Shown here: piece by piece, positions 8,878-58,585 of the stretch
Layout of the letters: each line of letters opens with the position of its first letter
Position numbering within the stretch: position 1 is the first letter of the stretch
Assembly (NCBI GenBank): GCA_964036045.1
Contig: OZ038378.1
Coordinates: forward strand, 181,102,001 to 181,166,000
Direction: 5' to 3'
Length of the DNA stretch: 64,000 nt
From: Eutreptiella sp. 'Long Island Sound 2002'
Lineage: Eukaryota > Protista > Euglenida
Translations under genes and position numbers: made by a program
The notes under the pieces: generated by a model
What the model was told of the DNA's origin: nothing
The model's database searches: none
The model's input: only the letters and a program-made list of their open reading frames with translations

Positions 8878-9255
8878 CCAATCGAAGCGTTTTCTCCTGA
8901 CGCATTTCTTGTTTGAGGGATTGTACCCGACCTCCTTTCGGACTCATCATTTGCCCCTTGCAGTGTCTCGGGGATGGTGCCCTTGAAAATACAGTGTTCT
9001 TTGTTCGTTCGTCGCTGGTGCGCAATGCACAAGAGTGATTCCAGGCCCTCAAACGACTGTTGTGAAGTAACCCAGAGCCTATGCCCATCAAAGGCACGCA
9101 GCTTGGTTCCCAGTCCCAATCCATAGCTGTCCTTTCATAACCCTCCAAAGCGACAACCATCAATGACAGCAACAACCCTCCAACCAGTAATGTCGCCATC
9201 CACAGCCGTCCTTCAACACCACACTCTCAACAACCTCAACAACCCTCAGGGACCC
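8878..9255 (-). repeat. ~378-bp dispersed repeat, copy A (inverted relative to 15675-16052)
   Basis: Reverse complement of 15675-16052. The ORF track shows near-identical translations (MDWDWEPSCVPLMGIGS...) at 8669(-) and 15806(+). Confidence 0.9.
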
Positions 9256-11046
9256 TGAAGGACCCTAAACGACCCTCAACAGCCCCCAGCTCATTTTCAC
9301 CATCTTCAATGACCATCAGGCTGTCCAACCAAATTTGATCTATTGTACCCTCAAAGGTAGAGGGATGGTGCCAGCACATTTCCAATCTGCAGCGTCGCAT
9401 GCTCAAAGCCTGTCACGTGGTTCTGAAACATGTTTCGTGTCATCTGTGAAACCCACAATGTTTCTCACTGCAATTTTCCATTGTCAGATGGTGAATGAGA
9501 ATGCGAGTGCGTTATTTATTATGGCGAGCAAATCTTGTTGAATAACCTCCTATGGCAAGCCTACTTTACTATTGTGCCACGTCCACAACCACATCGCCTC
9601 TCACATCGGAATTCACGGCAATGACAGGGCTGCCCATCTGGTGGACGTCAGTCAGAGGAGCTTCCCCCTGCTCTTTAGCAGAATACCCATGTTTCCTGGC
9701 CCGCGGGATGACGAAGAGGACCACGAAGTGTCGGAGGGCGAGTTGTCGGCGTGAGGCTGTGAGGGAGCCCCCCCCCCCCCCCCACGCGCCCAAAGCGCAG
9801 TCAACCCAAACATGGGACACCGAATGCACGACACGACCCGAACCCCGGACTCAAGCGGCACAGTGACCAAGGCGATAAAGCCCTGAACCCAAAGCCCTGA
9901 CCCCAGCCAGGGAGGCAGGGACGGGAACCTTTGGACAATGCAGCAGGCCACCGGCCACAAGCCCGCACTGAGCACTGAATACGCAAGGAAGGCCGTGGGG
10001 CGGTTCCACACCTGACCAATTGCGGCCCCCCACACGCGCCAGAAGAGATGCCCCCCACCTCAACCGCCTGGCACACCGCAAGTGATGCCATCCATCCAGG
10101 GACAATAACGCGAGAGGCCCAGGCCCTGTTGCGTCTCCGCCGTGCAGGTTGAGGTGTGTACGCTGGTGATGCAAAAGCAAAGTCGCAAGATCAGTCACCC
10201 ACGCCGTTCAGCTTCAGGCCGCCACAGAACTCCCAGCCCATGCCACAAACAGTGGGGCTGCTGGACACACCGAGAGTGGTAGGACCAAGTAGGTGCACGT
10301 TTCGAACACTGGAATCACCCTCCCCACTCACACCACAGGCACTGCTGAGCTTGCTGGATTCATGGAATTTGATGGAGATAAGGCGCGTGCATGGGGAGGG
10401 GGGGGCAGCAGAATGTCATCGCCGTGTGGCCCGGTCGAGGGGTGCTGGAGTACATGGATGAAGACCCCTTGCCGAGACCGCATCACCAATGTCGTGCAGC
10501 ACAGTGTGCTCGACGTGCCTCACCCGCGGAACGTTGAATGTTGTGACCCCTAACCAAGGTCCTATACCCAGTGGAGTTTTCAACCTAAGGCCCCCAAAGT
10601 GCCCTGAGCAGTGCGGGCCGGGTGGGGCAAGCAATCAGGACCAGCCCAGGGCTGACCACTGACCGGTATGCACGCCTGACCTGGTAGAGTCCCCACACCG
10701 GAAGCCCAAACCAATCAGTAGGCAACAACAGAGACAAGGGACAGGGTATGAACATCAAACGCCAACTGCATTCATTGACTGCGCTGATGATCGGCGGACT
10801 GAAGGCTGAATGAGTGAACAGTGGGTGGTGAAGGCCACGGGGAGCAAGCGCTGTTGGAGCCTAATGCAGACATTGCAACCTGGCTTTATTTCAGCCACCT
10901 AACACCCAATTTTTCTTCGGGGGGGGGGTGTCAAAAAATGTCTAACAGCAGACCTCCCCGCCCCTTCAAACATCCTCCCCCCGCCCCTTCAAACATCCCC
11001 CCCGGTCGAACATCATGAATATCTTTTTTTGAGCCGACAAAGTGGT

Positions 11047-12414
11047 CTTGGGGAATGCCATGCACGCAGCGTGCACGCAGTGCGAAGGTTTGGATGTCGG
11101 CAAATACTCGAACCCTAGTTTCGGCCCCTTTTCACAAGTTTTTGGTTCCGTGCCAGGGTTTTTTTTTTAGCTTCCTAAGCATTTAGGATGTGGCATATTT
11201 GAATTGTCAACCATTTTTGCCCATTTTCAACCATTTCCCGCTATTTCCTCCCCTGCATGGGCGTTAGCGCAAGGGGTGCGCGCCGGGCATCTTTGAGGGA
11301 GCGATATTTTGGGCCTTCAACCTTCCGGTGCTATTGAGGAAACTCGGCCAATTATCCAATCCACGCTTTGTTGCGTGGCCCCTTGAGTTGGGGTTAGGGA
11401 CTCACAATCCACGCTTCGGTGTGGCCCCTTGAGTTGGGGTTAGGGACTCGCAATCCAGGCTTCGGTGTGGCCCCTTGAGTTGGGGTTAGGGACTCACAAT
11501 CCACGCTTCGGTGGGAGGAGAGACGTTCACAGGACAACCATAATCCCCACTTCCCCTATTTCGTAACACATTTTACCGACAACATGCCCATATGCTCGGT
11601 GGGTGGAGATTTGTCGGATGTCCTTTTTAATCCCAAGTACGCAAGCCATGTTTATAAGATAACCGTGGCTGTGGACAATCTCGGGAATATAGTATAAATA
11701 TGTGACCTTATGCCGGGAACCTCCGCCGATGTTATGATTTGGGATCAACGTGGTCCTTCGCGAACACATGGGTAGTTTTTCAACTTTGAAATCGGTGCGC
11801 ATGACGGCCGCTTGCACACCGCCGTACCTTATATTGTTTGGAAAGCTTTGACCAACGACCAACAAGAGTATAATGATGTAATGCTTCTATCGTGCAAGGG
11901 TGGAGCACCTCTTTGCACCGTTGTGGCAATGGAGGATTGTCCGCAATGTCTGGACACGCTCTGCAACGGAGCTGCACGGCCATGTGCGTATTTTGCTCCA
12001 CCTTACTCAGTTTTGCATTCGTAGACAGACTGGGTATCAACCCTATGGACCTTGGCCTCATGTGCCACAGTCTGTATGGGCACAAGAGGAGGCAACCATT
12101 GTAGAGGAGGAAAATGATGACGGTGTTTGTTGCCAATTGTGTGGCCATCGTCCTGGTGATATATCGGAGTGTGGCACTTGCCACTTGAACATGTGTGCAT
12201 CTTGCATGCCCTTGCATAGTTGTACTCTACAAGGCTGAGTGGCTTGTTCATAACGACATTGATTACCAAGTTGAAGGCAGTTTCGTTGTTCTCATGTGGG
12301 CTTTGCTGCTTCGCCGTGCTACTAAATAGGTGACAAGTATTCTTGAGTGAGTATCCCAACCTCTAGGTGCGCAGTATGCACGCAGTGCGCACGCAGTGCA
12401 AGAACTTGGCCTTG
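11047..12414 (+). mobile_element. Repeat element copy 1 (both end blocks shared with 32530-33199)
   Basis: 11047-11234 matches 32530-32715 and 12214-12414 matches 32975-33199 at high identity by eye, while the interiors differ. This interior ends in a Cys-rich frame CQLC-x8-CGTCHLNMCASCMPLHSC. Confidence 0.6.
11357..11513. repeat. 46-bp minisatellite x~3.4 containing TTAGGG
   Basis: Unit caatccacgcttcggtgtggccccttgagttggggttagggactca, read directly. Confidence 0.9.
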
Positions 12415-15400
12415 GGACCAACTCCATGGGTTTGTTTCTAGGCGCTGTGGGTGAGTGCTAGTGTAGTTTATGCAGTTTACAACCATTTTTCTTATGTTGG
12501 CAGTTTTGGCGGTTTTAATGACCGTGTGGTATCCCCCTAGAGGGGTGGGACTTGGGATGTTGTGATAGTTTATCAATGCTAGAATGTAAAGGGATGTTTA
12601 TTGCAGCCTGGTTGTTGTTCTTTGTTGTAGCTTTGTCTCGGGCGGCTCATCACTCCTTTGGAAGACACAAAATCACCGTTTTCGCTTGAAATTGCCCCGC
12701 ATTGGTTGGCTGAAAAATGTGCTGTTTTGGTGACCCATGGCGACCGCCCGGAACACTTGGTCCAGGCTTGGGTAATCATGTGGTGACAATGGAACGACGT
12801 ATAAACACGTGGGGAGCTATGGAGCACAGATGGGGCCCTCCTAGTGCTGCTTTTTGGCCCAAAGCAGCACCGTTTTGGGCCTATTTGCACCATGGTGGGC
12901 AAAACCTGGGTGGGCTGATACTTACCAATGAGGGTGCTGACCAGCGGTGTGCGCGGTGCAGCGCGCGTGCGACATCAGCCCGGCACACACAATATATGCT
13001 CACACTAAAAGTTGCTGAAACGTGGCCAGTGTGCATTGTATGCAATGGTTAGATGATGCTATTGGTGTGTATGGGTAAAACATGCTTTGGGGGCATTATC
13101 TGGGGGGAAGTGGTGATGATGCATGCACAAAAGTTTCCCATTTCAATGTACTTTCTCCGCGTCCCTGCCTACCTTCCGAAAGGGTGTACATTGCACTAAA
13201 GCGTTGCATCCTCTGACGCACGCAGTGCGCACGGTGCAGTGCGCGGTGCGTTTCAGCACCCTCAATGTGTGTTGATGCAGGAAGCAGGTCCCATTCCACT
13301 TTTTTTCTTGTCAATGAACCCCATAACCAATTGTGCGGCACCCGGGCTCTATCTCCAGGTACCATGGGTTGCCCCCCCCCCCCTCCCCTTAGCGCCCAAC
13401 AGTGCGTATTTGGCTGTTTTCTGGCTGGCATGGGTTGGATGAACAATTGTGATTCTTGGGTGACCTCCAATGAGTGGTCTTGGGTGGTCTTGGGCAAGGT
13501 TGGGGTGATCATATGGTGGCAGCGGTATCCCTGCCCCCTCCCCCGTTGCAATCCCCCCCCCACCCGGGAGACCGTCACTTCCATGTTTTTCTAGTTAACA
13601 TCTATTGCGCTGGTTTGTGTTGCCCATCTGCTTTACACATGGCCTTGCATTGCTTTCCCATTACTTCAAATCAATCACCTGTGTGTATTCTGCGATGATC
13701 TCTCCCCAAAGGCGTTGTATGGGTGTGTTGTGTTGCTATTTGAGATCCAAGATGTTTTCTCCCTGTGACCGTGTACGGTACCACTCACACACACTTGGTG
13801 CACATGTGTTGGCCACTGTCGTGGGCCCTTCACCAAATGGGCCACAATTTTGCCACATTCGGTACATACGCCTTAGTGGGGTCACTCCTGTGGATTGTGA
13901 GAGCGCCCAACTCTCAAGGCTAGAGGCTGTGGCGGTTGAATCACCCAAGTCTCCAGAGTCACCGGACGCTGCCCAGTTTGCCTTGAAATACCCTTGAAAT
14001 CCCCCCCCCCCCGCCCGGGAGACCGTCACTTGGCGACCGTCTCCCCCCCCCCCACCCGGGAGACCGTCGCACACTAATGTGGGAGATTGCAAGGGGGGCG
14101 GGGGGTATAAATGCATGGGGAGCCATGTCGCACCAACTGGGCCCTCCTAGGGGCCCCTAGTGGTGTCCATCTCAGCCGAAGATTGCCATTCTCGGCTTAT
14201 TTGTAAGGTGGTGGGCAAAACTTGGTTGGCCTATTGTTGCCACAATGCTTGGATCCAAGCCCTGGTCCAATTCCACCTTTTCCCTTTACATTGACCCCAT
14301 AACCAATGGTGCGGTCCTGGGCTCTATCTTTGGGTACCTGTGATAGTCGACCAAAAACCGTGGTTTAGGGGCTTATTTAAAGTGTGGTGCGCAAAAGTTG
14401 GTCGGCCTATACCCACCACTGTGCATTCATTCACCCTGGTCCCAGTCCTCTTTTTTCTTCTCTCTAGACTCCCTAACCAAGGGCAAGAGTCCTGAGCTCA
14501 ATCTCTGATTATTCTTGGTCGGCCAACCATTGTTGAGGAGTTTGCTGTTTTCTAGCCAGTATGGTTTGGTTGAAAAAAACTTTTTGGTGCCCTCTGATAA
14601 CCTCCAAGGACCCTTGTGCCAAGATTGGGTCATCAATTGGTAACAATGAAATGACATAGAAACCCATGGGTAGCACCAACTGGCCACTGCTACAGGTGCC
14701 CACTATGGCCTAAAAGCGCCATTTTGGGTTTATTGCAGCGTGGGGGGCAAAACTTGGACCGCCTTTAGCCACCACTATGCGTGGATCCAGACCCTGGTCC
14801 CATTCCATATTTTCTTTAAATATGGACCCCCTAACCAGTGGCAGGGTCCCAGATTGTATCTCCAGATACCCCTGATTGCCCCCCCCATGGGCTCAACCGG
14901 TGAGGACTCAGCCATTTTCTGGCCTGCGTGGGTTGGCTGAAAAATAGCGATTTTTGGCCAACCTCCAATGACTGTTAGTGGCCTTCGTCCCAGCTGGTCA
15001 TCATTTGGTGACAATGGGAGCACCATGGAGAGCCACGCAGCACCAAATAGGCCCACCTATTGGGTGTCTATGGTCCCGTGAGAGCTAGTTGTAGGCAATA
15101 CCTGCGCATATGTGTGGATGGCTAGACAACAGCTCTGAGGCCACTTGGTGGTGGTGCTCAGGGCCAGTTCTCTGCGAACTGGAGTTGCTGACGGCAATAG
15201 AATTTTGAAAAGCATGTTGTACGCCCTCTTTGCGTCTCTTTTGGCCATTCGGTGGTGGGGAGGGGATCTCAGGAGCCTGGTGATGCACACTGCACAAAGA
15301 ACCGCACCACACTGCGATGCACACCACGCCATGGAAAGTGCACATCATGTAGGTGTGTGCGCTTTACAGAAATTTCCCAGCTTACCGGCACGAGGAAAGT

Positions 15401-51100: not shown

Positions 51101-52870
51101 GCTGTGTTCCTGTCATGACTCTTCTTAGGTATTTGCACTTTTCGATTCTTTTCTATTTTTTTCAACCATGTTTGCCCCCAAGAGTGCACCCCCCAAGGGC
51201 ACCTACGGACATCAACGTATACAGAGAGGATCCAGATAAGGAAATCGAAGGGGCATTGCAAGCAGCGTTGGTGCAAATTTTTGGGGTTGAGGTTTCGGCC
51301 AAGAGCGCTATTTTGGTTCCCCGCCATCTAGGTGTTGTATGCATCTACGTTCAGAAGCACAGCCGAGCAACCCCATGTGCTCGAATGCTAGTGGGGGGTA
51401 ACCCCAAGCGTGTTTTGGCCACCCCCCCGCTAATGTACCCTTTGGTGTGGGGTATGTGGGGCAATATTTCTTGCGAGACAAACGTTGGGTCCGAGTGTGA
51501 GGCCGCACCACCCGGCGCCCGGTAACACAACACAATGATTTTCTTTGGCCAAGCTGTGGCTAATCTATCTCGATTGAACTTCATTTATCCAGCCGGAGAG
51601 GGGGGGGGAAAAAATACCACATGACTGGGGATGTCCGGGGCTCCTCATCAGCGTGGATTCGCAATGCCCAACCCCTTTGTAAAGTGGGCTAAGCGAGATA
51701 CCATTCGGAAAGTCTATATATACAACAGGGTAACGTGCCCTTTTGGATGTAACAGGTGCAAAACGCAATAGAGGTTGTGGGTGTCCAATAAGTTTATCTT
51801 TTTTCAACCCTCACATTGTTCAGAGTGCTCGATGACACACACTCCAAAGGCGCTAACCTTTCAAGGGCGGGTTGCCACCATTTTGAAGTTCAAGCTGCAT
51901 AAAGCGATACTGTTTGGGCAAATGCCACCCGCAACATGGTTAGTGATTCAATTGAGGCCCATGGTGCTTACCTGTAACCGAAGCACTCTTCCGCCTCAAG
52001 AAAATGTGAGACTGCTTTCTGGGCAATGCGGTACCGCACGGTACAGCTAAACTCCGACGCTTGGCAAGGAACGCACCATCATTCAACTTCTAAAGTTGCC
52101 CCGCATACCAACCATTGTTGAATGGTTTGCCAAAACCATAGAAGTTACCAACAACCGGGACGACTCTATACGACAAACATTTGCTATAAACGGCGCAATA
52201 GCAGTGGTGCCTGGGACACAGGAGTAGTATTCTTCATAAGATGAAATGAAAGTGTATGAAAAAAAAAGTATGCATTGCATGCATTTTGTGTGAATGGGTT
52301 CAAATAGAGGTACACACAGAGGAACGTTTGTGATGTGTTGTGTTGTCTCAACCGTCCTACCAGTAAGGGACCTTGGCGGTGATGCGGGTGAGATGCTGCC
52401 TCAGCTGGGATGTGATACATTGCAGTTTCTACACCTCATCGCAATGATTGTACCCATCACACAATGGGCATAAAGCGGGGTGCTTGGTTAGAAGAGGCTG
52501 GCCGCGAGTTTATCGGGCAGCAAGACTTTGAACATCAGCAGCCTCCCATTGCGATTGCACATAAGTTACAAAACGCGAAATATGTGTGCTACCAAATGAC
52601 CAACAGCCGCCTAAAAGAGAAGATAAGCACATTCTTACAAGGATGTCGTCGCAAAAGGTATGCTCATGGGATTAACATGACATATCAGAAATTCTGCAGC
52701 ATATTGGAAGCATGGCCCACGAGCAGTCAACTGCAAAATGAGGTTAGCTTGAATTGTGAGTAGTATGAATTGCTACTTGGAAATCGCGAGACTAATGTTT
52801 GCAGAATGCCGGTGATGAGGCCACGTAATGTTAATCGAAGTGGACCCGCTATCGAAATTTCGATAAAGAC

Positions 52871-53122
52871 CTTTGAGGTGACACTCGGTGAAGAGGCAAT
52901 GGAGTCGTTGCTCAAACGTATGCTCAGATCCGCCATGGGATGCCCGGTTGTGATGCCCAGCGAGGGTTTGTCGAATCCAAAACGGTGTGTCCGCACTCAA
53001 AATCAACCCGTCGTACATCCTTGTCCAATGAGGCGGTGTCTTGCCTTCTTCTTCGTACTTCTTTCGTACATCCTGGGTCCATTCGAAAGCATGTTGTCCA
53101 CCGAGACACTTGAATGTAGCGC
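52871..53122 (-). CDS. ParB/Srx-fold protein, exon 2
   Basis: Acceptor ttcctcgttag|GC (phase 1). The splice gives FPT-G-ATFKCLGGQHAFEW...GLILSADTP..RQTLAGHHNR, matching the ParB-N (D)GxH(R) motif and the later Asn motif. Candidate donor AAAG|GTCTTT. Downstream exons are unresolved. Confidence 0.65.
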
Positions 53123-53219
53123 CTAACGAGGAATCGTACAATCGAAATTTCGATAGAAGGTACGATGTAATCCGTAACGCAGCACGGTAATCAATCGAAA
53201 TTTTGATAGCAAGGTATAC

Positions 53220-53661
53220 CTGTTGGAAAGAGTAAACACTCGATGTATTTGTTCTTCGGTGGTGGAGCAGCAAGGATGTCATCACCAACCAACGCTTTCT
53301 TCTTGGTAGTAACCGTTCTTGTTTGGCCGAAGCTCATGTCGCGGTCCAGTTCGATCTTCGAGTAATGAACAAGTTCTCGGGACTCAACCCAATCGTCCAG
53401 ATAGACCTGAGAAGTATCGTGCCATTCCTCAACCTCTGCGGATGTCGCTGGTCTGCTCTGCTCTGCAACGATCTTCTTCTTCTTCTTCGGTGGAGGGGAC
53501 TGTGAGAAAGGCGCGGCCTCGGAAGTATCCGTTCGGGGGCTTGCAGTGTCCGTTGACTGCGAATACGTTTGAGATGGAGGCTCATCGGAGTCCCCTGCCG
53601 GCTGCGACCGCTTCTTCTTCTTGATCCGCTTCTTCGGTGACAAATGGGACTCACCGGACAT
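53220..53661 (-). CDS. ParB/Srx-fold protein, exon 1 (basic NLS-like tracts and start of ParB-N)
   Basis: PKKRIKKKKRS and PPPKKKKKI tracts. VHYSKIELDRDMSFGQTRTV...ILAAPP..YIECLL resembles ParB-N I..D..Q.R....L...I...P..V. Donor ACAG|GTATAC at 53219 opens a 97-nt GT-AG intron. The true start may lie further upstream. Confidence 0.65.
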
Positions 53662-54129
53662 TGGGCAAATGGGCTGAGGGTGATTAACGAGGTAAAACCT
53701 TTGCGCAAACGAGCTGAGGAACTCGCAAATGGACGATAGGGGCGACGAAAGTGCTACTTTGCTTGTGAGACCGGATATTTCTGTGAAGGTTTTTCAGAAC
53801 CTCTAAATGTGAAGCGATAAGCTCAGATTCATCGGTTACGTCCAACTTAGAGTCCAAATTTCGTAAATGCAATCGAATTTTCGATTGAGGCAGTGGTCTA
53901 TCGAAATCTCGATAGACCTCAGACGAGGTACCGAGAAACGTTGTCTGATCAGGTTTACATAGACTTCGCAGGAGATGAAATACATCCGATATGCATAAAA
54001 TAGATCGAAGGAGCATTGGACCAATTATTGGACCAATTATTACATGATGAAACGATTCGATCAAGTACTTAGGCACTGAAATTGCAACAAACAAACGCGC
54101 AATCGAAATTTCGATAAGCGACTCAAATC

Positions 54130-56223
54130 TCAATGTTCAGCGGCAAGAAGACGCGGACCTTCGGCCTCATCAACTATATGTTCGTCGTCCTCATCAGGTT
54201 CGCTCTCGCTGGATGGCGGGTCAAAAAGGGCAGGAGGCGGGCCTCGTGGCTGTCTACGAAGGCGTCCCTGGTATCTGTCCGGAGGGGGATATGCTTCAAG
54301 CGACCGTGTTGTCTGTAATTTTTTCCAAGCTTTCACATAGGAAACACGATCAGCAAGAGGTGTTCTAGGAATGTGGGTCATATATTGATGGATTCCCTCT
54401 GTGACATCTCTGTGTTTGCACATTAACTTGAGAGCCCGAATCATGCACATATCAAGTAAGGGGGAATCAACAGTTAAGTCAAGTGGAGGAAGGTAACTGG
54501 GATCCCATACAGGATCAGGTGTAACTGTCCTGAGTTTGGTCTGGAACCGTGTGAACGGCGTGTTGATATCCGCAGCCCGTTGAACAAATGAACGTATCGT
54601 AAAAACAAAATGTGTAACCAGATGTGGCTGGACCGAAGATTTGAGAACCCGTTCCTTCTGCAAGGGGGGAAGGGTGCAGTAAACATCACTTGCGCGAGAA
54701 AGATCTGTGACGTGTGGCAGCAGAGTGAGAGCATGTCCCAAACGTGACAAAGAGGCTTCACAACTTTCCTCAACGAACAGACAACCAGGAACCATGTCAT
54801 ACCATAACTGCCATGTACCAAATGCAGTGCATAAGGTCCGAACATACTCTATCTTGGGAGCATGCTTTTGTGTAAGGGAGACCAGTAAAAGCAGACAATG
54901 TTCAAGAACAGTGCGTGCGGTCTTCCCTGAATCCAGAGCAGCCCCGGCCCAAGTACATTCTCGAACCCCATACCCAATGGCCCAGATTGCAGGTGTGAAA
55001 ACAAACAACAGACTGTACAGGGATTGAATCTTTTGATATGCCACAGTGTTTTCAAGATTCATTGGTCGTCGGAGGGTCGACAATCTATCTCTAGCCTCGG
55101 TGATAAGACCTTTCAACACGTTGCTCGCTAACAAAAGACCGGCAAAAACCTTTGCCATGTATATGAGCTTCCGATGACAAGGAATGCTAGTCCGCACCGT
55201 GATAAATGGTTTGAGCAGCCAAGAAATAACGGGAAAGAAACGCCTCAAAGTAATGTGTACACAGTATTTGTACGGATGCCAAATGCCATAAAGCAGTGGA
55301 ATGCGTTCCAAATGTGACCGGTAGTCAAGACTTCTGAGCTTCGCACCGTACATGAAACGCAAAACCGATGCATGTATTTTCATGTCCACCAGCAAAGGCA
55401 AATCCCGGCCTGTATGAATCTGTATGCGACGCATCATCTCAATTAACTGCAGCAGCTCAGTGTTTGTGCTTGTTCGACACTCGTCCAGCAGCATAGGTTT
55501 CCAAATTTGTGGATGCACGATACCTCTGGCGATGTCGAGTGGCGCACGGATGAAATGTGCCTGTAACGTCCCATCCGTAACAGCTGCAATAGTGTTCAGT
55601 AGACCCCTGATGGAGGTCCGAATGCATCTCATGACACCTGGCAGTCTGAAAACTATGCGGCGCAATGTCAGATGTCCAGGAAATCGGGGCAGCAAGATTG
55701 TAAAGAGCACGGCTACGGCAGAACAGTCAAGATGTCCGGGCGGTCCATCCGGGTTCTGCAGGAATCGTTTTCTGAAAAAATTGTCCATCCAAATGCCAAC
55801 AGAAGCAATGCTCATTGCATTCCAGAGGTCCATCGCTGCTGCAACACCAGATTCCTGCAGAGTCGGTATTCGAGGTGGAACTATGCCAAACCTTGCGAGT
55901 AACTTCCGTTCGCGCTGCGAAACAGTAATGTCCAGAGCCGGGCGAAAAGCGAGGGGTGCCGCACGCGGGTGCAGCACACGCCAGATGTTGAAGAGCTCCT
56001 GCTGGAGTACGCTGAGCCATCTGGGCAAAGGTGTACAGTTTCTGTTTGCAACCACCTGCTCAAATGTCTGGCGGCGGCGTTTGGTTATCCTTATTCCAAG
56101 GACAAATTCAACAAATCGCCTTGACGTACCGCCTTCGCAAGCATCTTCAATAATTTGGCGTCCATTCTCCCAAGAGTGCGAAGCGAGGAATCCTCGCACG
56201 TAGGCAATGAAATGGCCATCCAT
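54130..56223 (-). CDS. Intact 697-aa putative DDE transposase, KDZ (Kyakuja/Dileera/Zisupton)/DUF6589-like
   Basis: Uninterrupted 2094-nt ORF. The motifs fall in the order expected for an RNase H fold with a helical insert: VGIWMDNF (D1), LPLLVDMKIH (D2), LYGIWHPYK (the GxxH equivalent), FVEESCEASLSRL (E), then a Pro/acidic tail. Family assigned by eye. Confidence 0.65.
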   Translation of the reverse strand: MDGHFIAYVRGFLASHSWENGRQIIEDACEGGTSRRFVEFVLGIRITKRRRQTFEQVVANRNCTPLPRWLSVLQQELFNIWRVLHPRAAPLAFRPALDITVSQRERKLLARFGIVPPRIPTLQESGVAAAMDLWNAMSIASVGIWMDNFFRKRFLQNPDGPPGHLDCSAVAVLFTILLPRFPGHLTLRRIVFRLPGVMRCIRTSIRGLLNTIAAVTDGTLQAHFIRAPLDIARGIVHPQIWKPMLLDECRTSTNTELLQLIEMMRRIQIHTGRDLPLLVDMKIHASVLRFMYGAKLRSLDYRSHLERIPLLYGIWHPYKYCVHITLRRFFPVISWLLKPFITVRTSIPCHRKLIYMAKVFAGLLLASNVLKGLITEARDRLSTLRRPMNLENTVAYQKIQSLYSLLFVFTPAIWAIGYGVRECTWAGAALDSGKTARTVLEHCLLLLVSLTQKHAPKIEYVRTLCTAFGTWQLWYDMVPGCLFVEESCEASLSRLGHALTLLPHVTDLSRASDVYCTLPPLQKERVLKSSVQPHLVTHFVFTIRSFVQRAADINTPFTRFQTKLRTVTPDPVWDPSYLPPLDLTVDSPLLDMCMIRALKLMCKHRDVTEGIHQYMTHIPRTPLADRVSYVKAWKKLQTTRSLEAYPPPDRYQGRLRRQPRGPPPALFDPPSSESEPDEDDEHIVDEAEGPRLLAAEH

Positions 56224-56310
56224 CTTTGGCGTACATGGAACTCGTACATGAAATAGAAGACAACAAATAGTCTAGCATTTAAAATCCTTGGACTCTGTCA
56301 GACTGTCACT

Positions 56311-56864
56311 ATCGAAAATTCGATTGCAGTTTAAACAGCCTATGCTTTACAGGGTAGTTATTCCTTTAGCGGCTATCTAAATTTCGATTGGACGTTCCTA
56401 TCGAAATTTCGATAGGAATTGAATTCCTTTTCTGTCGAATGCTCCTATCAAAATTTTGATTCGAGATGCTCCTATCGAAATTTCGATTGGTTTTAGAAAT
56501 AAATCGATTGTGTAGACATCTCCATCGGATAAAACATTCATATGTGTTTGATTTATTTTACCTCTTATTTCTTTTACCTTTATTTTTCTACAAAGTTGTA
56601 ATTTAAAATTCATATACTACTGTAGTACAACTATGTTCCGGTAAACCTTCGTGAAGGATTTTGATGGTTTGCTCTCTGAATGTCGTTAAAGACTTCCAAT
56701 CGAAATTTCGATTGATCCATGCAAGGCAAATTGTCACGTAGGTTCGACAATCGAAATTTCGATAGCATCATTGCTTTTTCATTCTAATTTTCACATACAC
56801 AGACTATCAGGAGTCGGGTGGACAAACAGTTTGATGTAGCTAATCGTGCAACCGAAGTTTCGAT
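56311..56864. promoter_or_regulatory. Right cluster of eight ATCGAAATTTCGAT palindromes, upstream of the transposase ATG
   Basis: Exact copies at 56400, 56474, 56699 and 56750; variants at 56311, 56375, 56447 and 56851. Five lie within 56311-56487. The 56400 copy extends to a perfect 24-bp palindrome (ttcct...aggaa). Function is inferred. Confidence 0.7.
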
Positions 56865-57529
56865 ACATGAGACTTCCTGCCTACATTGTGAACTTCCCTG
56901 CGTCTCTTTGCTATTCGAACAACAAACAACATGCAGCAATTCAAATGAAACACACTGAAGTGCATATATGCATGCGCGTGGTAACACGGTGGTACACAAC
57001 TGCTCATGTACTTGCACAACCACTGTCTTTTTAGGACATTTCTTCTTTCCCGGGATTGGCTTCATGTTCTTTAACCGTGTTTTTCGCACCGTGTGACACG
57101 TCCCTTTTTTGGTCCACTTTCCGGTGACAGGGGCCCATTTCGGGTGGACACTTGGTTCGTCTAAGTATATAGGCCTTACGCAGAAAAAGGCCCATCAAAA
57201 AATTGAGGGGTCAATATGCATGGCTGCACCAACAAAGCCCCCAACCAACAGCAAATAGCCTTTTTGGCAAACTGTACCACATATAAAAGTAGCACCATAA
57301 TGGCACATACATCGCTTAAGAACAACGCAGAGTGGAAAATGACCGATGCACAATGAAATTGTCTCAAATTCCAGCTCATTGGTCCCCATGCAGCACAGCC
57401 TATGGAGAACAGAACACCATCCGGGTATATGATGAGCACGGCAATGAGCTACAAAATCATGCTGAGACCCATTAATAGATTCCCACTCCAATTCTGACTC
57501 CACCTCTGATACTGAATCTAGCCATGGCC

Positions 57530-58585
57530 ATAAAACCACCCCCAGATGGGGGATAAAACTACCCTGGGTAGTTTTATCCACCCCTTTTAAGGGTGGTAAA
57601 ACCACCACTTCCAGGGGACAAAACCACCCCTTTGGGGGGATAAAACCACCCCCCTTGTTAAAACCACCTCCTTCGGGGTGATAAAACCACCCCTGGGTGG
57701 TTTTATGCCACCAGGACACAACAAAGCATTCAAAGGCAGTCTGAGCAATGCACTCTGCCAAACCACTGCACAACATATGGCAGATTTTCACTGTTCGCAG
57801 GATTCACAGGATTCACAGTCTCCTCAACCTCACCGTGAGTCTGAGTCTTGGCAAACGGTACTTCTTGATCCTCTTACCCTCTACAGTAGCTGGGAACCAC
57901 CTGTGGCCTCCACCTGATCCATCAACTAGAACCCAAGATACTGCTTCTCCGAACTACAGTAAACAACACACTTCACAAACCCCATCCCACACCACGTTGC
58001 CAAAGCAGGTCCATCTCAAACCCTATCCCAACCCTATGTCCCCGTGGACCCCGAAACACATCTCAGACCACACCCCATACCGCATGCCGCAACCACATTT
58101 GCAACCTTGTCCCCAGCCCGGTCAGACATCCCAAAACCGCCTGTCACCCACTTTACCCTGCAACACGCATACAAAGAGCAATGTGAAACAAAACACTCAG
58201 GATGCAATCACATGTGGTTCCGTCACCTTCCATCACCTCTCCTATCTCCATGTCTGAAAAGGAAATGGGGCAAAGCCAACCCCCCCCCATTGGGGTGCTG
58301 GAACCACCCCAGGCAGGTTGTAGGACTTCGGGCATGAGAGCCCTCCATACAGCACAACGTATATAGACATAAGGCAACCTGTCTTCCGGTACTCTGATTC
58401 CTGGTTCACATGGAAATGGGCCATACCCCCCCCCCCTGCCTTGAAAGGGTGACAACCCCCCCCCCCCCCGCCCCCTAAAGGGGGGAATAAACCCCCTAAA
58501 CGGGGGAATAAACCCCCCCAGAGATCAAAAATGGCTAAACAAAGGCTTGGGGGTGGTTTTATCCCCCATCTGGGGATGATTTTAT
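57530..58585. mobile_element. Non-autonomous TIR element (~1056 bp) with TAAAACCACCC subterminal repeats
   Basis: 35-bp TIRs with 3 mismatches (ataaaaccacccccagatgggggataaaactaccc versus the reverse complement of 58551-58585). About 7 taaaac(c/t)acc copies lie in 57530-57705. TSD unclear; TA is formally possible. Confidence 0.8.

Follow-up and report, generated by a model that had tools for sequence, protein, structure and literature searches.

Structure and copies of the element

The window, a 64-kb stretch of euglenid DNA, contains a block on the minus strand with one intact transposase gene, the first two exons of a second, co-oriented gene and 14 copies of a short palindrome (Table 1). 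The block derives from an autonomous cut-and-paste transposon of 7.2 kb, of which it is a 3'-truncated, non-mobile copy. It measures 4.34 kb and was 98.3% identical to positions 9060-13404 of locus L001 in the same assembly. Complete copies of ~7.2 kb each were present at five loci of this assembly (L001, L002, L003, L013 and L014). Homology of the window copy to all five ended at 52823, a point within intron 2 of the accessory gene. Exons 3-7 and the inverted repeat of the 3' end are among the missing ~2.85 kb, no trace of which was found anywhere in the 64-kb window.

The complete copies showed the ends of a cut-and-paste DDE element at independent insertions, with a terminal inverted repeat (TIR) of 24 bp and a target site duplication (TSD) of 5 bp in 5/5 cases. 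The 3' end was the inverted 5' end with one mismatch in each copy, and the TSDs were AAGCA, AATTG, TTTTT, TTGTG and TTTTT. Only the 5' TIR is retained in the window copy. Identity among copies was 94-98%. Clustering at 90% identity placed the transposase in a cluster of 45 members and accessory exon 3 in one of 37. The full element holds two genes only, both in the same orientation. The description as a young eukaryotic DNA transposon in the initial annotation is therefore borne out for the family by copy number, identity, TIRs and TSDs, but not for the window copy, which is truncated and immobile, and the interval of 52851-56864 given there was too narrow for an element that runs from 57165 to 52823. 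The scarcity of C/G runs that had been noticed in the block was reproduced, with 0.23 runs of at least six per kb compared with ~2 per kb elsewhere; its GC content was 0.465 compared with 0.54 elsewhere. Rfam searches gave no match in the window or in L003, and besides the palindrome no other 8-10-mer was repeated in the terminal regions.

Table 1. Features of the transposon copy in the window.
Feature	Position	Strand	Basis
3'-truncated copy of a two-gene DNA transposon, full length 7.2 kb	52823..57165	-	homology to full copies
5' TIR, CTTAGACGAACCAAGTGTCCACCC	57142..57165	-	inverted counterpart at the 3' end of 5/5 complete copies
Eight palindromes upstream of the transposase gene	56311..56864	.	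motif search; positions kept in all copies
Intact intronless DDE transposase gene, 697 aa	54130..56223	-	ORF and fold
Three palindromes in the spacer between the genes	53872..54115	.	motif search
Accessory exon 1 (predicted), 147 codons + 1 base; basic low-complexity N-terminus and first half of the probable ParB_N-like domain	53220..53661	-	
Intron 1 (predicted), two palindromes (12 nt from donor, 18 nt from acceptor)	53123..53219	-	frame restoration
Accessory exon 2 (predicted), second half of the probable ParB_N-like domain, box LGGQHAF	52871..53122	-	homologous to L005, L006 and L009
Start of intron 2 (predicted), one palindrome (52851-52864), cut at 52823	52823..52870	-	complete copies

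Transposase

The transposase gene is intact and intronless, as had been read from the sequence initially, and its pN/pS was ~0.25. The transposase profile found 1615 cluster representatives; D147, D280 and E485/486/489 were invariant. The fold is predicted to combine a DDE RNase H core with an all-helical domain inserted into it, which agrees with the DDE assignment made before and places the protein among the RNase H-fold transposases with a conserved acidic triad. The nearest solved structures were those of the P element, hAT and Transib transposases. In the AFDB, DUF6589 proteins were matched with an E value of 1e-7, and in Atlas features the transposase scored 0.92 against DUF6589. The first 120 residues were predicted to be helical at low confidence.

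The earlier assignment to the KDZ class was not upheld. No Pfam family was found for the window transposase at E values up to 1 or for 39 relatives at E values up to 0.01, and neither the KDZ transposase model nor the CxC zinc modules were matched by any of these proteins. The Pfam model of DUF6589 (PF20231) also gave no score, so that the link to this family is one of fold and language-model likeness only. P element, hAT (Hermes), Transib/RAG1 and DUF6589 proteins have the DDE RNase H core with all-helical insertion in common with the transposase, but P element, hAT, Transib and DUF6589 showed no match to it at the sequence level. The TSDs of hAT and P elements are 8 bp long, and those of Transib are 5 bp long as in the present element. 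With a TSD of 5 bp and no BED or THAP finger or other recognisable DNA-binding domain found in the transposase, the element differs from hAT and P, while its TIR is unlike the Transib consensus. The lineage is unclassified and, judged by modelled fold, lies nearest to DUF6589 among the families.

Structure of the accessory gene

In the full element, the accessory gene comprises at least seven exons. Because the truncation at 52823 lies within intron 2, the two exons in the window represent only part of a far longer gene. Splicing is predicted from the genomic reading frames. Removal of intron 1 (97 nt, GT..AG, phase 1) rejoins the frame as ...FPTG/ATFKCLGGQH..., and the position and phase of this intron are common to the related families L005, L006 and L009. 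In complete copies, intron 2 runs on to ...TATCTATGCAG, and exon 3 comes next. The borders of introns 1-3 are ordinary GT..AG. Two palindromes each, 9-18 nt from donor and acceptor, are located in introns 1 and 3, and introns 4-6 carry none. The pN/pS of exons 1 and 2 was 0.1-0.4, with values of 0.1-0.2 for exon 1 in most pairs. Contigs from RNA runs gave patchy and low cover, partly over non-coding DNA, and contained no splice joints. The previously proposed intron-split ORF is thus supported by the restored frame, but it represents only exons 1 and 2 of the gene.

Probable relationship of the accessory protein to ParB

The accessory protein was homologous to those of the related families. 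Exon 2 aligned to L005, L006 and L009 with Smith-Waterman scores of 78-89 (shuffle mean 25, reached in 0/2000 shuffles), and the N-terminal domain with scores of 94-111 (shuffle mean 28). For the half-domain of L006, ParB_N or DUF6551 accounted for ~75 of the 100 named Atlas clusters that lay nearest, at scores of 0.90-0.91. A tblastn search of plasmids with this half-domain gave a match (E 2) to the GERR box of a genuine ParB_N protein whose gene neighbours that of a ParA-like ATPase. The spliced domain profile was colinear with the PF02195 region of the same protein in hhalign, scoring 32.8, whereas 200 column shuffles reached at most 18.3; this protein had been picked as subject of the hhalign and Smith-Waterman controls after the tblastn search (E 2). 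The window's own accessory protein scored 29 against the plasmid ParB_N reference in Smith-Waterman alignment, which is the chance level. None of the ParB evidence reached database-wide significance.

Several other candidates were discarded. The exon 2 profile produced only chance matches to PDB sequences, for example ribosomal protein S19e. Colinearity with the P1 ParB family in hhalign was not significant (E 0.61). The top phage match of the L006 half-domain in tblastn fell in a thymidylate synthase and was due to chance, and matches in Rhodococcus plasmids were rejected because they were on the strand opposite to the annotated genes. Single accessory exons of four families had no relevant match in Pfam, NCBIfam or PADLOC, and relatives of the ParB-like exon were absent from the JGI metagenome scan. 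No domain was recognised in the C-terminal two thirds by Pfam on exons 3 onward, exon 3 had no Atlas neighbour, and its AF2 model reached a pLDDT of 32.

The accessory protein probably starts with a ParB_N/Srx-like domain. The earlier claim of a ParB-fold protein is retained in this form on indirect evidence, namely the homology to L005, L006 and L009, the Atlas neighbours and plasmid match of the L006 half-domain and the colinearity with plasmid ParB_N, although there was no Pfam or PDB match and the box reads GGQHA. The GxxR or GERRxR box, which binds CTP in partition ParBs, was absent from the window family, where the window copy and L003 have LGGQHA or LSGQHA and the arginine is gone. One arginine is retained in some families; L005 and L006 have SGQHR at this place, and L009 has GGQHM. 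Because the box arginine is lost in the window family, no CTP-driven clamp of the bacterial ParB type is assumed, and the parallel to CTP-dependent clamps drawn in the initial annotation is weakened by the boxes of both the window family and its relatives. No ParA partner is encoded in the element.

Number, placement and conservation of the palindromes

The palindrome ATCGAAATTTCGAT was present in the window with seven exact, five one-mismatch and two two-mismatch copies, all at 52851-56864, as counted originally. Matches with at most one mismatch numbered 12, with 0.02 expected (0/100 shuffles). At up to three mismatches, the rest of the 64-kb window contained only three chance matches, each with three mismatches. 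The consensus is a dyad of 14-18 bp, C-W-ATCGAAATTTCGAT-W-G. Each of the five complete copies carried 18-20 palindromes, compared with none in 35.9 kb of their flanks, so that the palindrome is private to the element within its surroundings, as had been suggested. In the full element, the sites lie upstream of the transposase gene, in the spacer, in introns 1-3 and after the accessory stop codon, and the exons are free of them. Eight palindromes form a 5' cluster that lies between 300 and 850 bp from the 5' end; the positions of this upstream array are conserved across all copies of the element. Another four palindromes, at intervals of ~50 bp, form a 3' cluster that lies between 530 and 700 bp from the 3' end. 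In pairs with L003, palindromes differed at 18/728 sites (0.025), compared with 0.055-0.10 in the other non-coding classes (~0.07 pooled). The palindromes are under constraint and diverge ~3 times more slowly than other non-coding DNA.

The clusters in both end regions are consistent with binding by the transposase itself, which would help in finding and pairing the ends, similar to the subterminal motifs of Ac, En/Spm and P, with the accessory protein acting otherwise. The helical, low-confidence N-terminus of the transposase is compatible with this explanation, as is the lack of a recognisable DNA-binding domain that would point to another site. However, 8/20 sites are internal (spacer and introns 1-3), and none is closer than 300 bp to the 5' end or 530 bp to the 3' end, whereas subterminal repeats bound by transposases usually sit within these distances. 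A perfect dyad also suits a dimeric helix-turn-helix protein such as ParB better. Binding by the transposase is therefore considered unlikely.

Any two copies are mutually complementary, and the sites might act in RNA, either by zipping intron ends together, as in the non-conventional introns of euglenids, or as double-stranded RNA for silencing or self-regulation. The placement of the palindromes near the splice sites of introns 1 and 3 fits this idea, and the predicted fold of intron 1 pairs both copies and brings the splice sites together. L005 and L006 also have their own palindrome within the first accessory intron, and L005 has a further intron with complementary ends lacking GT-AG. The folding energy of intron 1 was unremarkable, however (z -1.07), and introns 1-3 are ordinary GT..AG introns while introns 4-6 lack the palindrome. 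Moreover, 12/20 copies are not intronic, and eight of these 12 precede the transposase gene. A role in RNA is accordingly very unlikely, all the more as the variation between families described below, with a fixed CG frame and changing flanks, is predicted by protein-DNA recognition and not by simple self-complementarity.

Palindromes of related families and proposed function

Related families of the same genome have palindromes of their own: GCGTAATTACGC in L005 and L006, CTCGTGATCACGAG in L007, GGGCGCGATCGCGCCC in L008, GCGCGAGGCCTCGCGC in L010 and GCGAAATTTCGC in L009. Counted from the centre, position -5 is C and position -4 is G in all of them. Half-site positions 1-3 and 6-8 thus vary between families and the CG at positions 4-5 is fixed.

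Sites for a host factor, or multiplied promoter or terminator modules with no binder encoded by the element, would be another explanation. The array upstream of the transposase start resembles an operator or promoter region, and when pairs of palindromes at a distance of 20-50 bp were searched for, the same 14-mer turned up in pairs on four unrelated AT-rich metagenome contigs. These contigs had no homology to the transposase or the accessory gene, so that the 14-mer itself is not unique to the element. On the other hand, outside the elements neither the window nor 36 kb of flanks contains a copy, and a shared host factor does not explain a different palindrome in each related family of one genome. 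This explanation is highly improbable.

The palindromes are instead regarded as putative dyad binding sites for a dimeric DNA-binding protein encoded by the element, most likely the accessory protein. Each family would recognise its own DNA through this protein and coat, mark or regulate it. Specificity may shift between families through half-site positions 1-3 and 6-8 around the constant CG at positions 4-5. The joint interpretation, with a truncated transposon copy, a probably ParB_N-like accessory protein and palindromes that serve as dyad sites of an element-encoded protein, is slightly favoured.

Comparison with known systems

The initial annotation assumed that no described element combines these parts. 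However, accessory protein PAG3 of the EnSpm/CACTA element Plavaka from Bostrychia moritziana has an N-terminal ParB-like domain (Petroll et al. 2025, bioRxiv 10.1101/2025.02.11.637652; Curr Biol doi 10.1016/j.cub.2025.04.044). Inverted-repeat arrays adjoin PAG3 and differ between families, and PAG3 was proposed to bind, and perhaps modify, its own transposon (Petroll et al. 2025, 10.1016/j.cub.2025.04.044). The design is thus already known in kind, as the same idea has been put forward for red-algal Plavaka. Both systems combine a eukaryotic DDE transposon, a ParB-like accessory protein (probable here) and family-specific inverted-repeat arrays, which in the present element also lie beside the accessory gene. 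They differ in the transposase, which here is neither Plavaka nor CACTA and has no Pfam match, a 5-bp TSD and a P/hAT/Transib-like fold nearest to DUF6589. PAG1 and PAG2 are absent from the present element, and unlike in PAG3, no 2OG-oxygenase domain was detected by Pfam on exons 3 onward (exon 3 model pLDDT 32). The palindromes are spread over all non-coding parts including introns, and the host is a euglenid, not a red alga.

A ParB-like accessory protein with a DNA methyltransferase is also known from Sola1-1_Ec32 of Ectocarpus (PMC12477816). This is a giant element of 21.5 kb from the Sola1 superfamily with the accessory gene on the opposite strand, and the methyltransferase domain has no counterpart found in the accessory protein here; palindrome arrays are not described for it (PMC12477816).

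Likeness to bacterial ParB-parS consists in the probable N-terminal ParB_N-like domain, in several copies of cognate-looking perfect dyads of 14-18 bp, and in specificity that differs between related replicons or elements. The two-gene element differs in having no ParA, in ~20 sites over 7 kb and in a GERRxR CTP box altered to SGQHR in relatives and GGQHA in the window family. By all sequence searches run, the C-terminal two thirds were unrelated to ParB, and the accessory gene, interrupted by spliceosomal introns, is part of a nuclear transposon. The wider proposal is a DDE lineage with ParB/parS-like self-recognition, in which the accessory protein of each family would read only its own dyad at ~20 sites, within a fixed CG frame with variable flanks, and so coat, mark or regulate the copies of that family. 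Its specificity would diversify like plasmid incompatibility groups, and after loss of the CTP-binding arginine its mode of action would differ from that of bacterial ParB. It is tentative and held with somewhat less than even confidence.

With 1615 representatives, no Pfam family and a 5-bp TSD, the transposase lineage merits a classification of its own. If the accessory protein reads the palindromes, the families would form a compact natural set of orthogonal protein-DNA pairs in one nucleus, for which the fixed CG frame with variable flanks offers a direct handle for specificity swaps. If true, a prokaryotic segregation domain would have been reused by eukaryotic transposons for self-recognition.

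Element structure and copies

Five complete copies of the window's transposon family (L001, L002, L003, L013 and L014) were present in the same assembly, with 94-98% identity to the window copy across its whole extent. They continued 2.85 kb beyond the point where the window copy stops. A further fetched locus, L004, was the window itself (99.99% identity). The complete element comprised about 7.2 kb, with the 5' end CTTAGACGAACCAAGTGTCCACCC and, at the 3' end, the same 24 bases inverted with one mismatch. Direct duplications of 5 bp surrounded all five complete copies (AAGCA, AATTG, TTTTT, TTGTG and TTTTT). Based on the inverted ends and the duplications, the complete element is a real cut-and-paste transposon that has moved in the past, in agreement with the DNA transposon proposed in the initial annotation. 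The window copy was broken off within intron 2 of the accessory gene and has no 3' end, and it is unable to move, despite its intact transposase ORF. The sequence features that had drawn attention to the block, namely the palindrome copies, the intact 697-aa ORF, the intron-split ORF and the scarcity of C/G runs, were confirmed by counts, frame restoration and composition. C/G runs were about ninefold rarer in the block than in the remaining window, and the GC content was also lower.

Near its 3' end, the L003 copy held about 630 bp of additional unrelated DNA, probably a nested insertion. The sequence flanking this copy read ...TTTCTGAGTGTCTATTTTTTT / TTTTTTTCGAAA, which we take to be the spliced-leader sequence of a Euglena-type SL RNA, split at the TTTTT target; Rfam gave no match for it. 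This flanking sequence provides the strongest indication of a euglenid host. Just beyond the 5' end of the window copy, a motif resembling GGGGTGGTTTTAT(C/A)CCCC was repeated about eight times, with copies alternating between the two orientations. These copies represent a separate short repeat family outside the element. The element's sampled words were represented at 5-64% in metagenomes and metatranscriptomes from estuaries (runs X7 and X10-X14), so estuaries are a habitat of the host or of one of its close relatives.

Coordinates of the element, its parts and neighbouring features
Feature	Sequence	Position	Strand
3'-truncated transposon copy	window	57165..52823	minus
Breakpoint of this copy	window	52823
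Transposase ORF	window	54130-56223	minus
Accessory intron 1, predicted	window	53219..53123
Palindrome copies	window	52851-56864
Palindrome with both CpGs altered	window	56447
Short repeat motif	window	57540-57740
Additional DNA	L003	~11150-11780
Spliced-leader-like flanks	L003	4040-4064 and 11888-11905
Second accessory intron	L005	4798-5024
Protein P0009	L009	10001-11365
Chromo plus RVT_1 retrotransposon	L010	18340-21545

Transposase

Clustering at 90% identity placed the transposase in a group of 45 members from one ENA assembly, and a profile search retrieved 1615 cluster representatives at E <= 1e-3. Invariant positions in the alignment were D147 (in W-x-D-N), D280 and E485/E486/E489. The AF2 model (mean pLDDT 62, core 70-90) showed an RNase H core of beta-beta-beta-alpha-beta topology, with a long helical insertion after it. 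Its nearest named proteins in the AlphaFold DB were DUF6589 proteins (E ~1e-7), and DUF6589 was also returned by the feature search in Atlas (score 0.92, 186 features in common). No Pfam model matched the window transposase or 39 relatives; the lineage is unclassified, with KDZ, hAT and P membership all lacking support. Between copies, the transposase showed a pN/pS of about 0.25, indicating that the copy differences arose under selection for function. With values of 0.1-0.4 for accessory exons 1-2, both element genes are under selection.

Accessory gene

Downstream of the transposase gene, the split ORF regained its frame once a predicted 97-nt GT..AG phase-1 intron was removed. The complete copies continued past the two exons of the window with a predicted exon 3 of 346 codons, intact in L003, L013 and L014, followed by at least four more predicted exons with GT..AG introns and a Lys/Glu/Ala-rich tail. 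The predicted protein should thus comprise about 800 aa. Exon 3 and the later parts, the C-terminal two thirds, had no matches in the searches run, and AF2 modelling of exon 3 failed, with a pLDDT of 32. In the related family at L009, protein P0009 consisted of a transposase fragment fused in frame with accessory exon 3 and is therefore an internally deleted derivative. The second accessory intron of the metagenome relative L005 had complementary ends (ACAGGG ... CCCTGA) instead of GT..AG borders, by which it resembles euglenid non-conventional introns. It also contained its own family's palindrome.

The N-terminal domain straddles the exon 1/2 junction. Compared with the related families at L005, L006 and L009, the window domain reached Smith-Waterman scores of 94-111 (shuffle mean 28), with both halves contributing, and intron position and phase were identical across all of them. 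Judged by sequence, these regions are clearly homologous. The family pattern, i-x-L-D-x-d...hGQxRxV...L...P...G-x-y/f-x-I-i-s-G-Q-H-(R), resembled ParB_N on visual inspection. Among the 100 named Atlas clusters closest to the L006 half-domain, about 75 were ParB_N (PF02195) or DUF6551 (scores 0.90-0.91). A tblastn search with this half-domain against plasmids gave 13 weak matches (E 0.2-10), three of which were near-identical Paraclostridium ParB N-terminal-domain proteins aligned exactly at the GERR box. The Paraclostridium protein matched PF02195 at residues 33-118, and its gene adjoins a ParA-like ATPase gene. The spliced family profile was colinear with its residues 24-149 (hhalign 32.8, maximum of 200 column shuffles 18.3), and spliced L005 and L006 scored 78 and 83 against it (shuffle mean 32); as this protein had itself been chosen by a search, the shuffle controls carry a bias, and none of the ParB comparisons was significant database-wide. 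The window's own accessory sequence had no direct match to the Paraclostridium reference, and the alignment of the family with the P1 ParB family was colinear and not significant. Altogether, the domain is probably ParB_N, which upholds the ParB-fold product of the initial annotation in part. The box, GERRxR in partition ParBs, read SGQHR in L005 and L006, GGQHM in L009 and GGQHA in the window's family. The CTP-binding arginines of partition ParBs are thus partly or wholly lost, and the CTP clamp is therefore not to be assumed.

Palindromes and their candidate binders

The 14-bp palindrome ATCGAAATTTCGAT occurred in 14 copies in the window: seven exact, five with one mismatch and two with two. 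At up to one mismatch, 12 matches stood against 0.02 expected, and outside these copies only three matches, all at chance level, appeared in the 64-kb window when three mismatches were allowed. Including its flanks, the full site was an 18-bp dyad, C-W-ATCGAAATTTCGAT-W-G. The complete copies held 18-20 palindromes each at conserved positions. The 5' region contained eight, at distances of 300-850 bp from the end, the intergenic spacer three, introns 1 and 3 two apiece, intron 2 one, and the stretch after the accessory-gene stop codon four, spaced about 50 bp apart. None was found in exons or in 35.9 kb of flanks, and the terminal regions contained no other recurring 8-10-mer. Relative to the most divergent copy, per-site differences amounted to 0.025 in palindromes, 0.055-0.10 in other non-coding DNA and ~0.09 at synonymous sites; the palindromes are therefore under constraint.

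Within the 14 window sites, 24 of 28 CpGs were intact. At one site, both were altered symmetrically (to CA and TG), leaving a perfect palindrome, and a one-step intermediate occurred in L003. The 14-mer is also used elsewhere in nature: four AT-rich JGI metagenome contigs (L015-L018, GC 0.30-0.43) without homology to the transposase or the accessory gene carried it in pairs 25-45 bp apart.

The clusters in both end regions would fit binding by the transposase itself, but all sites kept a distance of at least 300 bp from the 5' end and 530 bp from the 3' end, and eight palindromes were internal, making this reading unlikely. A role in RNA is very unlikely: the pairs in introns 1 and 3 lie 9-18 nt from splice sites and a predicted fold zips intron 1, but the energy of this fold did not stand out, the introns are bordered by GT-AG and 12 of 20 palindromes were outside introns.

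Related families, with transposases 27-35% identical, had different dyads: GCGTAATTACGC in L005 and L006, with outer bases differing between the two, CTCGTGATCACGAG in L007, GGGCGCGATCGCGCCC in L008, GCGCGAGGCCTCGCGC in L010 and GCGAAATTTCGC in L009, the last having the CGAAATTTCG core in common with the window's palindrome. At L010, a retrotransposon adjoined the sister element, which carries the 22-bp dyad AGTGCGCGAGGCCTCGCGCACT. Aligned at their centres, all dyads had C at -5 and G at -4, usually A at -1, and varied elsewhere. Family-specific sequences inside one genome make binding by a host factor highly improbable. A constant frame in which the specificity bases vary would be expected from a homologous dimeric DNA-binding protein co-evolving with its sites.

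Comparison with known systems

In red algal Plavaka transposons, the accessory protein PAG3 combines a ParB-like N-terminus with a 2OG-oxygenase domain, is adjoined by inverted-repeat arrays that differ between families, and was proposed to bind and modify its own element (Petroll et al. 2025, bioRxiv 10.1101/2025.02.11.637652; doi 10.1016/j.cub.2025.04.044). The Ectocarpus Sola1 element encodes an accessory protein with ParB-like and methyltransferase parts, and the same study cites comparable proteins from green and red algae (PMC12477816). New relative to this work are the unclassified DUF6589-like transposase lineage with a 5-bp TSD, the probable euglenid host, the spread of sites across introns and both end regions, the site constraint, the CG frame conserved across families, and the loss of the box arginine. 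We suggest that an element-encoded protein, presumably the ParB_N-like accessory protein, binds the dyads. The outcome may be self-recognition, with the element being coated, marked, regulated or assisted in synapsis.
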